Below, one piece after another: positions 1,594 through 48,841 of a stretch of DNA of 64,000 bases. The stretch is from Podarcis cretensis (Eukaryota), in contig OX638156.1 of the NCBI GenBank assembly GCA_951804945.1, forward strand, positions 43,896,001 through 43,960,000, given 5' to 3'. Numbering within the stretch: the first letter of the stretch is position 1; every line of letters starts with the position of its first letter. The notes beneath the pieces are model-generated. The model had not been told where the DNA came from. It searched no databases and was given only the letters and a program-made list of their open reading frames with translations. The position numbers and the translations under genes were made by a program.

Positions 1594-2586
1594 TTAGGTA
1601 GCTGTTCCTCCAACTGCTCCAAGCTTCTGCTCTTCCTCCGATGGTGGTAGTGAAAGTCCAAATGACAAATTTGCTATATCAGGTGGTTCCCTCTCCTCCA
1701 CGGTTCCTTTCTGCAGATCCTCCAGGTACTTCTCCAGAAATTGTTCTTTGTCCTGAATTGTTTTTATTTTAATCTTCCTTCCTTTAAAGTTAAAGGACAA
1801 TCCTTGTGGAAACTCCCATCTGAATGGTATAGTGTTTTTCTTCAGCAGGTCTACTAAACTTTTGTAATATGTTCTCACCTCTAAAATGTATTTAGGAATG
1901 TCCTTGAAAATCTGTATCTGACAATTTTGGATCACCAATGCCTTTTGATAATGCAAATTCAATATTCTATCTCTTTCTTCTTTTGATCTCAGTGTAATTA
2001 GACAGTCCCTTGGTTTTTTATCCTGCCTTCTACCCAGTCGAAAGGCTGATATTATCTCAAGTTCCTCATCTTCCTCCCATTCCTCCTGCCAAAAAGTTAT
2101 GATGTTCTCTGTAAGAAATTTCACAAGGTTGTCCCCTTCCCCTTCAGGCACCAATCTAAATTTTAAATTCTTCTCTTTACGTTGAAGTTCCAGTAAGGAG
2201 AGGGCTGCATCATGCTCATTCACTTTTTTAATAATAGGCCCAAATTTTTCCCTTGTCTCTTCAGCCGTTGTTTTTGCACTTTCTGCAATCTTTCGTGTTT
2301 CTGAACTTTCCTGAATTAATCTATTTATAGAATCTGTGTTCGATGTAACACTAGCTGTATTCACATCCAACCTTGTTGTCAACTCTGTTAATTTTTTAGA
2401 ATTCTCTGTCGATAGCTTTGTCAATGCTTCCAGGGATTGATTTATTTTAAGTAGTGCCTGAGTCATAGGATCCATAGAAGCTGGTGTTTTTTCCTGCACA
2501 GCTGCAGTTCCTGATATAGAGGCCCTTTTCTTGTGAGATTGTTTTGCTTTCTGCCTTGTTACTATCTCTTCTGTAGGGGCACTCAT
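1594..2586 (-). CDS. L1 ORF1p (coiled coil, RRM and CTD; Transposase_22-like), 330 aa
   Basis: Heptad-rich N-terminal half, KEKNLKFR RRM start, AFRLG..KPRDCLI, IFKDIP, FRWEFPQGL; lies directly upstream of ORF2. Confidence 0.95.
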   Translation of the reverse strand: MSAPTEEIVTRQKAKQSHKKRASISGTAAVQEKTPASMDPMTQALLKINQSLEALTKLSTENSKKLTELTTRLDVNTASVTSNTDSINRLIQESSETRKIAESAKTTAEETREKFGPIIKKVNEHDAALSLLELQRKEKNLKFRLVPEGEGDNLVKFLTENIITFWQEEWEEDEELEIISAFRLGRRQDKKPRDCLITLRSKEERDRILNLHYQKALVIQNCQIQIFKDIPKYILEVRTYYKSLVDLLKKNTIPFRWEFPQGLSFNFKGRKIKIKTIQDKEQFLEKYLEDLQKGTVEEREPPDIANLSFGLSLPPSEEEQKLGAVGGTAT

Positions 2587-3518
2587 ATCCTCAAGGTCGT
2601 TTTCACAGAGTTGATTCCCAAGTGGAAAATCCCACTGTTACTTTTCAAAGTGCAACAGTTTCACATAGAACCCTCTAGAGGGAGCATTCAATTGTATCCA
2701 AATGGCAAAGATAGAAGAAAACAAAGAGGCAAGGAAGTATAACAGTAGCCAGAAGTTTCCAATATCCAAATTGTAATGTCTCTATTTTCTATGTGGCCAA
2801 AATGCAACAAAGTACGTCTAAGGTCCGGTAACTTTGTTACAAACAAGTCCCCACTTCTCAAAGTTTGACAGTCCACGTCCCGGTGTCTTGTTTGGGCAGC
2901 CCGACCCCGGGGGATTTGGCAATGGAAGGTCTTAATTTTCCCTTAATTTTCCAGCAGGTTAACAACGTTCCAATCCCTTCCCCCCTTCTCCTGCCAATCT
3001 GGGGGGAGGTTTTAAGTCCGATGTCAGTTTGACAGCTTAAAAAAAAATTAGAAAGATTCCCTTTAAGTGCAGCTTGATTTTCGTTGCTTTATCTCTTCTG
3101 CAGTTCCGGGGAGGCAGACTTCCTTAATTTTTGCCTTTCCCGTTTTCAGCCGAATTTTTTTTTTTAATGTCCCGTTACTTTTTCAATCTTACTCACGGGT
3201 GTTGTAGTCAAATTCCAATTGCAGGAAGGAATCGGCGCTCTCCGCTCATGGCGACGCGGCTTCACTCCGCTAGCTGGGTGACGACTCTCAGCACCGCGCT
3301 TACCCCGATGCCGCTCAGAAGCCTTTAAAAAGGCTCCCTCACAGTACCGGGGGGCGCAAAGGGTGCCCACCGAATCTCCTTTGTTCACAGGCTCCGCGCC
3401 TGTGATTTTAGGGGTCCCCCGCTTGCCGTAGCGGGTGAGACCCGAACTAACGGAGCAGTCCTGCCTCGGAGCTCGAGGCTCGGACCGCCATTAAGCGCTG
3501 GCGCCGACCGGAAGTCTC

Positions 3519-3637
3519 GACCCGGAAGTGTCTTCGGACGGTGCTGGCTCCCGGCCTCTAGAGTGAGATGAGCGCACAACCCTAGAGTCTGTCAAGAGTG
3601 GCCCGTACGGGCAGGGGTACCTTTACCTTTACCTTTT
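3519..3637 (+). mobile_element. Sauria SINE (Squam1/POM-like) 3' fragment, cut by the L1 insertion
   Basis: Matches the 3' third of the SINE at 51483-51852 and ends in ggtacctttacctttacctttt. Confidence 0.9.
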
Positions 3638-3839
3638 AGTATGCCTAGGATTCTATCAGTGAAGATTCTGCCCCATCCATCCCTAAAATATAAAAGGAAA
3701 TAGAGTAATAAGCAAAAAAAGTGCCAGTTTTTTCCTATTGGTACTTCCCACTGTTTGAGATTCAGGGAATCCGGTCATTTAGGAGGCAAGAAAAATAACA
3801 AACTGTTTTCCCTCCTTCTCCACAGAAAGAAATTAATCC

Positions 3840-4175
3840 GGACTTCCGGGTTAGCGCCATCGCCTAATGGCGGATTCCCTCCGAGCTCCGGAGGGAATTG
3901 GCTCAACAGGGTTCGGGTCCTGCCGCGCCGGCGATGCGGGGACCCCTAAAAACCACAGGCGCGGATGCCTGTGGACGTGGTGACTCGGTGGGCACCATTA
4001 GCGCCCTCCCGACCTGCGAAGGAGCCTTTTTAAAGGCTACGGAACGGGGAAGGGGGAGCGGCGCGGTGCTGAGAGCCCTCTGCTTCCCCTGCTGAGTGAA
4101 GCCGCAAGCCATGGACGGAGAGCGCTGACTTTTTCCCTTGAACATTCGGACTAAAAGCAACAACCCGTGAGTAAT
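3840..4175 (+). promoter_or_regulatory. L1-type internal CpG-rich promoter/5'UTR with ETS-like (ACTTCCGG) and YY1-like (AATGGCGG) motifs
   Basis: Motifs lie within the first 35 nt and recur at equivalent positions in the L1 (3483-3518, minus) and, degenerate, at 46809-46840; function is inferred. Confidence 0.6.
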
Positions 4176-4665
4176 ACGGAAATTGGATTTAAAAAGGAAT
4201 TTTTGTATTTAAATTCGATACGACCGGGGAGGTGTAAAAAGGAAGTCCGCCCCCCCGCCTTGCAGACAACCTAAAGCAAGGACTAGAGAGCTAAAGTTGA
4301 GAGAAACATCTTTGTCCCCTGTGGAGAAAAACTATTAATTTCATGATTGGACACTACAATTAATTTTGCTGGAGGACAAGAGTCGGTTTGGAAAGTTAAA
4401 GTGCAACCCCCCGGGACCCGGGAGTGATCTGTGAGAAAGCCTGCTGAAAAGATACGGACTTTGACAGCTGTCAAACTAGCTGTCAAAGCTGGGAAATAAA
4501 AGGAAACGTTGTTTCTGGTGATTCTGCTGGTTAGATTTTCTGTAATTTGGATACAAATTGCTGGGAATAAAGAAAAATAAGTTACATTGGACTTTTGGAT
4601 TGGAACTGGAAAGATACTAAGTAAACAAAATCCCCCTAGAGGGGAGTTTTGGAATACTGCAAGAA

Positions 4666-5256
4666 ATGGCTGTAAGTGGAAAAATACTGACTGAGCTGAA
4701 TAGGACATTTCATCTCCTGGGAAAGCTCCAGGAATTACAGGGAGAGATCCAGGACCAGGGTAATATTTTGTCTACAAGGGTGACAACATTGAATGAAGCA
4801 GTAAATAAACTTGCTAGAACAGGAAGAGACTTGATACAAGCCTTTGTCATGGAACCAAAAGCCCTTGAAGTTGGAACAGAAGTTGCTGCAGCTGGGCAAA
4901 AGAAATCTGATAAATTTGAGAAAGTGGAAAAAGAGACATATGAGGATTTGGTGGAAAATTTGGTGGAAAATGAAGGTGAAGCTATAATGTGGAAGATCAA
5001 GGCAGATCAGAGGCCTGTTAGCACAAGTGAGATCAAGATGGAAGTTGGAGCTTTTGGGACATACAGTTTTAAAAAATTTAAGGAACAAAATTTGAGCTCC
5101 ACTTTTAAATTTAGAGGCCTGCTTGGAAGAAAAATGGTCATTACTGGGACAGATCTTCCCCGAGAGTTGGTGTTGAACACAAAGGATGGTCAAAAAATCC
5201 GGCAGAGTGAAAAGGAAAGAGTTTTAGGAGCCTCGGAAGTTTGGGATCCAGGCTGA
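4666..5256 (+). CDS. 196-aa ORF of the non-autonomous element; diverged ORF1p derivative (coiled coil, truncated RRM)
   Basis: Intact ATG..TGA. LSTRVTTLNEAVNKLARTGRDLIQ aligns ungapped with ORF1 LTTRLDVNTASVTSNTDSINRLIQ, and KEQNL..FKFRGL resembles ORF1 KEKNLKFRLV. Confidence 0.7.
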   Translation: MAVSGKILTELNRTFHLLGKLQELQGEIQDQGNILSTRVTTLNEAVNKLARTGRDLIQAFVMEPKALEVGTEVAAAGQKKSDKFEKVEKETYEDLVENLVENEGEAIMWKIKADQRPVSTSEIKMEVGAFGTYSFKKFKEQNLSSTFKFRGLLGRKMVITGTDLPRELVLNTKDGQKIRQSEKERVLGASEVWDPG

Positions 5257-6234
5257 GAATTGATGGACTGATGGATACTGATTTGGGGATCAAACCGGGA
5301 AAGGGAGGGTGGGATTTGAGAATCCAAAGGGTGTTAAAATATAGTTTGTTAAGTCCTTTTTTCTTTATATAACTTTTGTGATTTTTATGGAATGTGGGGA
5401 AATTGTGGAAGGGAAATTTGGGTCGACTTTAGGAAAAAGGTTTAAGATTAAGTTAAAATTGGGTTTTTTAAATTAATTAGAATAAGAACTTGTTGAGCAG
5501 ACAACATAAATTGGAATGCAAGAAGGGGAAGGGGGAGGAGGCCTGAGAAATAAGGTGAAAGAAGATAAGGTTCTTTAAATATTATGTGTTTTTAATTGTT
5601 TTTCTTTTTTGGATATTTTTTGTGTTTTTTAATTTTTGCTTTTTGTTCTGTTATTATATGGAAAATTTCAATAAATATTATATAAAAAAACAACAGAAAG
5701 AAATTAATCCAACCCTGTGTTCAAAAAGGCAAAGGAATTAAAAAAAACCCAAGCATTTTTGTCACCTAGCCAAATAAAATAGGAACTCTTGATAAATTCC
5801 CATTATGTCCTTGTACCTTTCTAATCAAGCACTTCAACTGTTCTTGGCTCCTGTTGATGCAATTAACTTCTGCTTCAATAACTTGCATTGCACCATGAAG
5901 AAAGAAATGCATTTCTCGTTCTTTATTACGGGTGTTAATATCACAGTATGGTTAAACCTGCTATACAACCGCTACAATCAAAATTAGATGGCTGTTCATT
6001 AAGCTGAAATGAATTACATTATTTCAGATATGCTGTACATCTCTTGGGAATGTCTCGTATTGAAATGATCTTTGGGAGAAAATTGAAGAGCGATTGCATG
6101 CTATAGGGCAAAGACATAATCTGTATGGCTTTTAGGGGGAGAAATCTTTAACAGGTAGGTTTTGCTCATGCACCACATGAGACAGGGTGTTAAATTATGG
6201 TTGTCTCTTTTCAAAGTAAAAACATACAAATAAC

Positions 6235-46806: not shown

Positions 46807-48841
46807 TCGGACTTCTGGGTTAGCGCCTCCGGTAATGGCTGAATTCCTCTGATCGGGAGGAATTTGCCTCATGGAAATCTGGGTCTGGCCGCCACGGTGA
46901 AGGCGGAGACCCACTAGAAATCACAGGCGGGTAAAGCCTGTGAACGTGGGATTCGGCTGGCACCTTTTGCGCCTCCCCTACTCGCGGGGAGACCCGGTTT
47001 CGGGGATCCGGAGCGACGTGGGGTGAGTGGCGCGGTGCTTCGAATTGACTGCTTCTTCCACGGAGCGAAGCCGCATAGCTGTTGCCGGAGAGCGCTGACT
47101 TTTTCCTGTGGACAATTTGATCTTAAAGCAACTACCCGTGAGTAGAGCTGAGAATTGGATTTTTAAACGTCTTAATTTGGTGCCGAAACAGGAGGTCTAA
47201 AACAGGAAGTCCACCTGCCCCTTTTGTAAATAGATTGAAGCAATGAGGATGCAAGCTGAAGTCTCGGAAAGCCTATTGTAAAGGACTAAATTTCCATCAG
47301 TAAAAAATACTAAACCCCCCTTGGTGGCAGGAGAAGAGGGGGGAAAGTTTTGGACTGAGTATACCTGCAGGAGAGAGTGAACAGAGTTAATATACCACCG
47401 CGCCGATCCTGGAAACGGGCTGCCAACAGGACTGACCATGATTAGAACGTTCACTGACAGTTAGTTAAATAAGAGGAATACATTGTTTCCATGGTCTCCG
47501 TCTGCGTTTAAAAAGGAGTAAAAGTAACAGAAAATTGAAACTTTATTGTTTGAATTGAGTTTAAAAGGACTAATACAAATAGAAACAATTTGGGACAAAA
47601 AGTGAACACCAATATAGAAACTATTCAGAAACTGACACAGGAATCTACTTTGACATGGCAAACTGCGGAGAAGGCTAGGGAGAAAGTTATTGCTGTTGAA
47701 CCTAAAGTAACACAATTGGAGAGAGAGTCCCAGCCTTACAGATGCAATTTGATGACCAAAGTTGATGCCTGCTATGATTGAATTTAACGAAAATCAGATT
47801 TCGAGGATCAGAGCCCTACCTGAACTGGAGAAGGAAAGTTTGATAGATTTCCTTACACAGGAATTTGATGACTTTTGGGACCGGGACTTGGGTCAAGAAG
47901 AGGTTAAAACTGTGAGGGCTCTCGGACTTGGAAGAGGAGGGAAAAAAGAGAAGAACAAAATAAGAGACTGTTGTAAATACCAGAGGAACTCAGAAGAACA
48001 ACAGTCAAGAGTGGAAATTTTGAAAGACGTCCTCAAATACCTTTCGGATCTTAGATTTAACTACGGAGATTTGGTTGCCCTGTCAAGAAGGAATAAAATC
48101 ATCTTTAGGTGGAGTTTCCCCGAGATCTACTCTTTAGCCTCAAAGGAAGGAAAATGAAAATAAGATCAGTGGAAGACAAAGTAAAGTTCATGTATAAATA
48201 TGAAGAAGACTCACAGAAGGGACTTGGAAAAGAGTTAAGAGCATCGGACAGAAGATCACCAGGTTGATGGACTATAGGGAATTGGCGGATATGACTGGCA
48301 GAATCCGGGACCAGGGAGAAGAGTCAGTGGAAGAAGATTGGAAAAAGTTTAAAGATTATTTATAAAAATATTGTAAAATTAATGAGTGTTAGAAAAATGT
48401 TGGAAAGGAGCTATATGGCTTTAGTAGAAATGTTACAAGGAATTAAGTACAAATAGATTATTAGAGTATTAAAGGGAAAATAAAGTTAAAATATGTTAAG
48501 ACAATTATATATTAAAGGGAAAAATAAGGTTAGAATATGCTAAGATAAATTACAGGACAGAAAACTGAGGAAGATGGAAAGGAATTGCTGAAACAGTTAA
48601 TTAAAGTGGAATACAAAAAGGGAGGTGTGAGGAGGTTGTTGAAACAAGTAAATGAAAGTTAAGATACTGAACTTATTAGATGTGTTTTAAATTGTCTTTG
48701 TTTGGTTTTGTTAATTTAATGTTTGGGGGTTGGTGTTGTGTGGTGTTTTTGTTTTTGCATTGTATTGTTTTGTTTTGTTTAATTCTTTGTCTTTCTTTTG
48801 CAGTCTTTAAAATGTTAATAAATATTATTTTTTTAAAAAAA
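46807..48841 (+). mobile_element. 'Half-L1': 5'UTR, decayed ORF1, last ~40 codons of ORF2, 3'UTR and poly(A)
   Basis: 19-bp TSD gaaacacaattatcttttg (46788-46806 and 48842-48860); 5'UTR homologous to the other two members; AATAAA at ~48817. Confidence 0.93.
47530..48260 (+). pseudogene. Frameshifted L1 ORF1 remnant
   Basis: VNTNIETIQKLTQES, RIRALPE..LIDFLTQ, ILKDVLKY, IIFRWSFPE and KGRKMKIRSVEDK match ORF1 at 1594-2586 across frameshifts. Confidence 0.9.

Follow-up and report, generated by a model that had tools for sequence, protein, structure and literature searches.

A candidate folded RNA domain in the 5' leaders of three L1-family elements of Podarcis cretensis

A 64,000-nucleotide (nt) stretch of the Podarcis cretensis genome (contig OX638156.1, positions 43,896,001 to 43,960,000 of the forward strand; hereafter the window, numbered from its first letter) holds three related 5' leaders of L1-type retrotransposons, copy A on the minus strand and copies B and C on the plus strand, each opening at the identical GACTTC motif. 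Comparison of the three points to a reading that we believe about as readily as we doubt it, namely that the first ~300-420 nt of the sense L1 transcript would form one closed multi-helix RNA domain whose base pairs are under selection. RNA shape, and not promoter sequence alone, appears to be what is selected. The conservation of 5' motifs is already known for L1 elements of Anolis, and searches of open-access text gave no paper with a covarying fold for a lizard or other vertebrate L1 5' untranslated region (5'UTR).

Base pairing in three diverged leaders

The A, B and C leaders are the only homologous copies in the window. An nhmmer search gave three matches at E <= 7e-95 and none other below E 0.7, and a covariance model search of the window returned the same three at E <= 10. 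Mean column identity in the alignment of the three leaders is 74% over ~360 nt and 61% farther downstream, and the three lineages differ pairwise at 29-42% of aligned sites. All of the fold and covariation tests described here were made on these sequences (n=3) from the one 64-kb window.

The stability of the predicted folds was compared with that of 200 dinucleotide shuffles. For the first ~205 nt in the sense direction, z was -3.61 for A, -3.38 for B and -3.11 for C, with 0/200 shuffles as low in each case. The following ~205 nt displayed no folding excess (z of +1.10, -0.82 and +1.70, in the same order), and sense stretches of ~430 nt gave z of -5.9, -2.4 and -6.0.

The sequence-only reading that preceded this analysis had described three hairpins, H1, H2 and H3, and all three were found in each of the copies at the coordinates it gave (for B, 3874-3898, 3915-3945 and 3953-3974). 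A further stem described there, AGCCTT/AAGGCT (H5), was likewise confirmed in A and B. A proposed 5' stem, CGCCA/TGGCG, fared less well, being intact in A and B but retaining only three of its five pairs in C and exhibiting zero covariation. The loop of H3 varies in length, with 5 nt in A, 6 nt in B and 7 nt in C.

Six local helices comprising 48 pairs, defined from copy B, were scored on two alignments. On a structure-blind MAFFT alignment, 87.4% of 143 cells were paired and 12 pairs had changed on both sides, compared with a mean of 4.3 +/- 1.7 such double changes in shuffles (0/500 reaching 12) and 1-8 in slid controls. On a model-fitted alignment the paired share was 94.4%, with 13 double changes, a number that again none of the 500 shuffles reached (slid controls 0-4). 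By helix, the both-side changes of the MAFFT alignment were 7/11 in H1, 3/11 in H2, 1/8 in H3, 1/6 in H5, 0/5 in the 5' stem and 0/7 in H4. A neutral star simulation started from B produced at least 12 double changes in 8/5000 runs, and its paired fraction of 0.74 +/- 0.03 compares with an observed 0.874 (0/5000 runs reaching it). Copies A and B differ at 30 of 95 paired columns and at 33 of 89 unpaired columns; paired columns thus diverge like unpaired ones, suggesting that pairing is conserved and not sequence. Across the three copies, then, the earlier claim that pairing was kept while stem letters changed is borne out, with double changes in excess of the shuffle, slid and simulation controls.

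Folding ~430 nt of each copy singly and applying RNAalifold to the MAFFT alignment both gave long-range helices (referred to as helix L1 to helix L5). The RNAalifold consensus comprises 108 pairs at -132.86 kcal/mol, and its 15 helices lie at homologous places in all three lineages. The element, previously taken for a 185-nt row of hairpins, is therefore better described as a domain of about 300-420 nt that includes long-range helices, inside which H1, H2, H3 and H5 would be nested. Through the long-range helices, conserved blocks at about +250-300 and +400 would be joined to the capped 5' end (nt 1-33) and to the H1-H2 linker. Helix L1 has undergone one G-C/A-U exchange and one wobble change, and also appears when each copy is folded singly to minimum energy. 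Helices L2-L4 (21 pairs) are 95.2% paired, with 3 double changes and 6 one-sided changes that are still paired. When the H1-H2 linker, which forms one strand of helix L5, was matched against duplex partners in its own 760-nt leader, the homologous site was the best in A and B (0/148 windows better). In addition, the consensus fold has the H4 region paired with a conserved GGCGCGGTGCT block.

Taken together, the long-range helices (39 pairs) are paired in 94.0% of 117 cells with 9/39 double changes, a level reached by 1/500 shuffles; slid controls gave 0-5 double changes and 36-45% paired cells. The whole consensus is 92.6% paired and contains 28 double changes, as against 12.5 +/- 2.5 in shuffles. 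The 5' stem and H4 are alternatives at best, because they lack covariation and their nucleotides are taken by covarying long-range helices. A closing helix from a 220-nt consensus (nt 4-9 with about nt 178-183), also without covariation, was dropped, being superseded by the 430-nt fold.

Mean duplex energies were also calculated for arms of the same copy (cognate) and for arms taken from another copy (non-cognate). H1 fell from -15.5 kcal/mol with cognate arms to -7.6 kcal/mol with non-cognate arms, helix L5 from -13.0 to -6.1 kcal/mol and helices L2-L4 from -33.1 to -26.2 kcal/mol. Smaller differences were obtained for H3 (-12.7 cognate, -11.9 kcal/mol non-cognate) and helix L1 (-11.4 and -10.6 kcal/mol, respectively).

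The sense strand scored better than the antisense strand. Consensus energies for sense and antisense were -81.8/-73.3, -67.5/-55.4 and -132.9/-100.8 kcal/mol on three alignments, and z against the position-preserving null described below was about -5.5 for sense and -3.1 for antisense. The consensus contains 41 G.U cells vs 8 A.C cells, and 27 pair columns mix Watson-Crick pairs with G.U vs 8 with A.C, a count that is biased in that the structure predictor accepts G.U. Moreover, the antisense consensus no longer contains the long-range helices. RNA-level constraint is therefore favoured.

Points against the fold and competing explanations

Several observations weigh against a selected RNA fold. 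The local covariation is uneven and lies mostly in H1, where insertion of a single C-G pair could account for two of the A-versus-B changes. In both alignments the outer H2 arm of A is one column off register, making ~2 of the double changes there artefactual, and the exchange of H2 arms between copies gave no cognate gain (-16.5 vs -16.5 kcal/mol). No pair of the 5' stem or of H4 has changed on both sides and nearly all of their pairs are invariant; the same is true of the internal helices at alignment columns 156-161/231-236 and 166-170/226-230. Helix L5 is weak in C, at -8.4 kcal/mol, and 24/148 windows pair better there. Over the first ~205 nt the antisense strand reaches a z of -4.5 in B and in C, stronger than the sense strand, and over 431 nt of B the sense z of -2.4 is weaker than the antisense z of -3.2. 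Retention of the leader by derivatives that lack the second open reading frame (ORF2) does not tell an RNA role apart from that of a promoter, since such derivatives need a promoter too. Likewise, the sequences with which nt 1-8 and ATGGCG pair repeat promoter-like motifs (GGAAGT and GCCAT) in inverted orientation, and for that reason these long-range partners could be conserved as DNA sites.

Furthermore, prediction and testing of the consensus structure used the same three sequences, and two further nulls were run on that account. Uniform neutral drift from a structured root gave consensus energies of -72 to -75 kcal/mol (standard deviation 7-8, minimum -96.2), compared with -132.9 kcal/mol observed, and these sets yielded 20 +/- 4 double changes by RNAalifold with a maximum of 34. 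The observed 28 double changes are therefore unexceptional as a count, and what stands out is limited to the energy and the paired fraction. In the position-preserving null the same sites were substituted and the letters randomised, in 200 sets. The energy of these sets was -102.2 +/- 5.6 kcal/mol (minimum -117.7 of 200), well short of that observed; their re-predicted structures held 18.0 +/- 3.6 double changes (maximum 27), and their paired fraction on the observed structure was 0.828 (maximum 0.861) vs 0.926 observed. This null being beaten, the letter choices of evolution appear biased toward keeping pairs. With three sequences this bias is good evidence, short of proof, and the three-copy sample makes the finding a well-motivated lead and not an established structure.

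Of the competing explanations the most serious, though in our judgement unlikely, is a promoter acting at the DNA level only, in which the blocks and inverted repeats are transcription-factor sites of a CpG-island promoter and RNA pairing is incidental. A conserved 5' end is common to the Anolis clade-1 L1 families, and the start motifs of mammalian, zebrafish, frog and clade-2 lizard elements have been tied to transcription factors; the zebrafish start is GGACTTCCGGTT, and frog families have a common GAGCTCCG about 40 bp from the start (these statements being taken from the accessible part of PMC5381506). In the window, all three copies open with (A/G)GACTTC(C/T)GG and have TAATGGC at about +26 to +32, and in A and B the motif GAGCTCCG occupies about +44 to +51, forming the loop and 3' arm of H1. 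The leader is CpG-rich over its first ~300-350 nt, which is also where the fold lies, with a second but weak rise near nt 550-650; several helices are invariant, and the inverted motif copies mentioned above would fit a promoter. However, H1 and helix L5 have changed most of their letters and yet stayed complementary, paired columns diverge like unpaired ones, and loop and spacer lengths differ among the copies. On the sense strand, most one-sided changes are compatible with G.U pairing (the 27 columns vs 8 with A.C), and the sense consensus energy is better than the antisense by 32 kcal/mol. The variable H3 loop length and the diverging paired columns also misfit a fixed dimeric binding site.

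A mutational origin without function is, in our view, quite improbable. Template switching in the course of replication or reverse transcription would repeatedly re-copy one arm of a hairpin from the other, so that inverted repeats persist and look compensatory, and it has been reported to create and maintain RNA hairpins (accessible text of 10.1101/2021.04.15.439925). The perfect 10-bp stem of H1 in B agrees with such a process, as does the difference between A and B in H1, which resembles a paired insertion of the kind that one-step arm copying would give. Arm copying would not be expected, however, to produce helices L1, L2-L4 and L5, whose arms are 190-400 nt apart and contain many G.U pairs, nor does it sit well with the same 15 helices at homologous places in lineages that have diverged by 29-42%.

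It is very unlikely that the selected structure belongs to an antisense transcript or to single-stranded first-strand complementary DNA (cDNA) as reverse transcription ends, instead of the sense RNA. Such an origin would suit the antisense values over the first ~205 nt, which are as strong as or stronger than the sense values in B and C, and the antisense consensus does lie below the position-preserving null (z -3.1). The sense consensus energy was nevertheless lower on every alignment tried, G.U cells outnumber A.C cells by 41 to 8, and it is the antisense consensus that loses the long-range helices.

Finally, a self-cleaving 5' ribozyme, which the sequence-only reading had put forward as one possible function, has next to no likelihood, whether of the hepatitis delta virus (HDV)-like or twister-sister-like type, as in R2, L1Tc or the human L1 5'UTR. 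Ribozymes are found at the 5' end of other retrotransposons without long terminal repeats (non-LTR elements; PMC3185411, PMC3383444) and one in the human L1 5'UTR (PMC11620745), according to the accessible parts of these papers. Rfam covariance models gave 0 matches in the whole window at gathering thresholds, and on 3150-4700 at E <= 10 they gave six chance-level matches with no self-cleaving family; apart from a GIR1 chance match (E 9.5) in the spacer outside the leader, no ribozyme family was matched even at this threshold. An HDV-like P1 helix (nt 1-7 in a compact core of about 70-100 nt) was tried as a candidate and rejected: the only conserved complement of nt 1-8 lies ~400 nt downstream, and there is therefore no compact HDV-like core. 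The target-site duplication of B abuts nt 1, as expected for an internal-promoter transcription start.

The elements that carry the leader

Copies A, B and C had been read from sequence as homologous 5' leaders of one L1 and two ORF2-less derivatives. This assignment was upheld by the coding content of A, with ORF1 and an Exo_endo_phos-bearing ORF2, and by the target-site duplication and poly(A) end of B. In A, a 5'UTR of 931 nt precedes ORF1 (2586-1594, minus strand), followed by an ORF2 frame that is open from 1586 and leaves the window at the window's start. Of 3609 candidate proteins, 21 are homologous to the ORF1 product (330 amino acids, aa) at E <= 0.001; those with names belong to Podarcis muralis and P. 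lilfordi, one being titled an L1 RRM-domain protein. An Exo_endo_phos domain (an APE-type endonuclease) is recognised in the first 528 aa of ORF2 (1.5e-13), with the reverse-transcriptase part falling beyond the window edge. Since the leader is followed by ORF1 with L1 homologues and, directly downstream of ORF1, by ORF2 with Exo_endo_phos, A is a genuine L1. A Pfam search (E <= 0.01) gave no family for the ORF1-type proteins at 1594-2586 (-), 4666-5256 (+) and 47762-48157 (+), and divergence seems to have put the lizard ORF1 lineage beyond the reach of the Pfam models for L1 ORF1.

The 5' ends could be placed closely. Contigs of four sequencing runs, aligned at 80% likeness, have loose ends before 3519 in 4/4 runs, and a different repeat begins there; the 5' end of A is therefore at ~3517/3518. 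The runs were compared as assembled contigs, the RNA label of two of them being a guess. In B, the 18-bp target-site duplication (3822-3839 and 5693-5710, with AATAAA and an A-run just before the downstream repeat) abuts 3840, so that G3840 is the 5' end of the retroposed RNA. The start of C at 46809 has the same letters as the 5' ends of the other copies.

The leader family is very abundant, with 24,308 contigs placed in run X1 at 80% likeness. Among the contig differences listed inside the leaders, at least three sites (3437, 3450 and 3453) are affected, all at unpaired positions. A gapped pattern of the start motif found 30 loci in metagenome contigs, 0/30 of them homologous to the leader (nhmmer E <= 1e-3); such exact-pattern matches to a GC-rich, variable-gap pattern are due to chance. 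The coordinates of the leaders, helices and associated sites are collected in Table 1.

Table 1. Positions in the window of the three leaders, the predicted helices and associated sites.
Feature	Position	Strand	Basis and remarks
Copy A, leader domain in full L1	3116..3517	-	homology and consensus-helix mapping; 5' limit from adjoining high-copy repeat at 3519
Copy B, complete retroposed ORF2-less L1 derivative	3840..5692	+	18-bp target-site duplication, AATAAA, A-run; leader homology to A and C
Copy B, predicted folded 5' leader domain	3840..4248	+	holds all B helices listed here; RNAalifold consensus of ~430 nt, helices mapped to window; pair counts
Copy C, leader domain, second ORF2-less derivative	46809..47212	+	homology and consensus-helix mapping
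Helix L1, 5' strand (5'-terminal 8 nt, B)	3840..3847	+	pairs with 4241-4248; 8 pairs, 100% paired
Helix L1, 3' strand (conserved GGAAGTC block ~400 nt downstream, B)	4241..4248	+	consensus fold
Helices L2-L4, 5' strand (B)	3849..3872	+	nt 10-33; pairs with 4107-4130; overlaps CGCCA/TGGCG stem
Helices L2-L4, 3' strand (conserved GCCAT and GGAGAGCGCTGAC blocks, B)	4107..4130	+	consensus fold
H1 (B), 10-11 bp hairpin, apical loop AGCTC	3873..3899	+	most-covarying helix; 7/11 pairs changed on both sides
Helix L5, 5' strand (variable H1-H2 linker, B)	3901..3911	+	pairs with 4087-4097; 5/10 double changes
Helix L5, 3' strand (B)	4087..4097	+	equally variable stretch ~190 nt downstream of linker
H2 (B), bulged hairpin	3914..3945	+	in 3/3 copies; 3/11 double changes (MAFFT), partly register artefact
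H3 (B), 8-bp hairpin	3953..3974	+	7 pairs invariant; closing pair U-A in A and C, C-G in B
H5 (B), AGCCTT/AAGGCT hairpin	4021..4040	+	C carries CCCG/CGGG hairpin at corresponding place
H1 apical loops	B 3884-3888; A 3469-3473 (-); C about 46851-46855		self-complementary 4 nt
Splice-donor-like ACCCGTGAGTA, 11 nt	4163..4173; 47134-47144; 3190-3200	+; +; -	invariant in 3/3 leaders

Copies A and B stand head to head, with 5' ends ~320 bp apart (3517-3840) and internal promoters pointing outward. Between them lie a high-copy repeat and then a single-copy spacer at 3659-3811 with low contig depth. The repeat adjoining A (3519-3658) has a summed contig depth of about 1e6-1e7 in run X1 vs about 1e5 for the leaders. 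It contains a CCGGAAGT of its own, and short TACCTT-like repeats form its end.

The ORF1 searches also returned two P. muralis proteins of 422 and 454 aa, a TRIM39-like E3 ligase and an uncharacterised protein among their titles, which contain RING and B-box Pfam domains. They match the L1 ORF1 at 48-51% identity over 75-82% of its length, and could be either gene-model chimeras or a TRIM-ORF1 fusion.

Related systems and a possible role in the L1 cycle

Judged from its sequence, the leader clearly belongs to the lizard 'clade 1' type of L1 5'UTR. As described in the accessible part of PMC5381506, Anolis clade-1 families have long 5'UTRs (about 1.3 kb) that are alignable across families, with a conserved GACTTCCGG...ATGGCG 5' end and two CpG islands 300-400 bp apart. 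The leader in the window has the same type of 5' end and a CpG-rich start, is long (931 nt in A) and is followed by ORF1 and ORF2. Diverged copies of it can likewise be aligned, those of three elements of a single genome here and those of different families in Anolis, and in both cases the first part is the most conserved. The two differ in the spacing between the motifs, which is longer here (the comparison being made at motif level), and what that part of PMC5381506 gives for Anolis is motif conservation only, with RNA folding covering just the ORF1-ORF2 spacer.

Two other 5' elements of non-LTR retrotransposons share some of these properties, as far as the available parts of the sources go. 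In Pr77/L1TcRz of Trypanosoma cruzi L1Tc, the first nucleotides are both internal promoter and structured RNA, and the sequence is common to non-autonomous derivatives (PMC3383444, PMC3185411). L1TcRz is, in contrast, a 77-nt HDV-like ribozyme, whereas the lizard domain would span 300-420 nt, has no Rfam ribozyme match and has a 5' end that pairs ~400 nt away. The human L1 5'UTR ribozyme is also an RNA element of an L1 5'UTR defined with covariance analysis; it differs in being a ~35-nt minimal motif in a non-homologous mammalian 5'UTR, with no related Rfam match in the window (PMC11620745).

If the leader is a selected RNA fold, the same DNA would do a double job, carrying the internal promoter motifs (the GACTTCCGG-type start and ATGGCG) and a CpG-rich island, and the fold would act post-transcriptionally on the full-length L1 RNA. 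With helix L1 starting at nt 1 and helix L2 at nt 10, the cap-proximal end would be buried. Our best guess is that the fold sequesters this end and presents a defined scaffold, which would govern translation versus template use, or uptake by L1 proteins into the ribonucleoprotein particle (RNP). An RNP-assembly signal and an IRES-like leader, the other functions put forward by the sequence-only reading, may be regarded as candidates. The model for the scaffold is provided by R2 and by the structured 5' leaders of retroviruses. R2, a non-LTR element, has a conserved folded 5' RNA thought to act on its own protein and on later integration steps; it differs from the lizard L1 in being site-specific, in belonging to another clade and in having a single ORF. 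The functional guess is modelled on this parallel, a folded 5' RNA in a non-LTR element.

Two further features of the leader bear on the comparison with retroviruses. The splice-donor-like ACCCGTGAGTA occurs three times in the whole window, each time inside a leader stretch that is otherwise about 61% identical. In the consensus fold the site falls between the 3' strands of helices L2 and L1, where a large region is unpaired. None of the joints listed for the contig alignments of the four runs is a GT..AG joint at this site. It could be a real intron donor, or a U1-binding site that would shield the A-rich element from premature polyadenylation. In addition, the apical loop of H1 contains a 4-nt palindrome in every copy (AGCT in A, AGCT in B and GATC in C), which extends to GAGCTC with the closing pair in A and B. 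A self-complementary H1 loop has thus been kept in all variants, an outcome for which we estimated by hand a chance of roughly a few percent, and it could serve either for kissing-loop contacts or, at the DNA level, as a palindromic site.

Leaders of the human immunodeficiency virus type 1 (HIV-1) kind are also long and structured, with long-range pairing of the 5' end, a conserved internal splice donor and a hairpin with a palindromic apical loop. They have no homology to the lizard L1 leader, and the likeness is one of predicted features only. By analogy, the leader might work as a retroviral leader does, with the capped 5' end of the unspliced, full-length RNA locked through pairing to sequence that lies downstream of the donor-like site, so as to mark this RNA as the template for retrotransposition and damp its translation, although we consider this improbable. 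Splicing or helicases would then open the 5' lock and free the cap for ORF1 translation, and within the RNP the palindromic H1 loop would let one L1 RNA pair with another or with the RNA of an ORF2-less derivative. If true, RNA-RNA pairing through the H1 loop would explain how the derivatives hitch a ride. To our knowledge, L1 has not been found to need a packaging signal.

The 5'UTRs of vertebrate L1 elements are usually treated as fast-changing promoters, and we know of no cis-acting RNA signal that explains L1 cis-preference or the choice of non-autonomous elements. If the selected fold is real, base pairs, those of the 5'-locking helices included, that are kept across diverged active lineages and in their ORF2-less parasites would point to a step of the L1 cycle that operates on RNA, for the testing of which H1, helix L5 and helices L2-L4 would constitute a compact, mutable element. 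Such a fold would also explain why lizard L1 5'UTRs are alignable across families, as the accessible part of PMC5381506 reports for Anolis.

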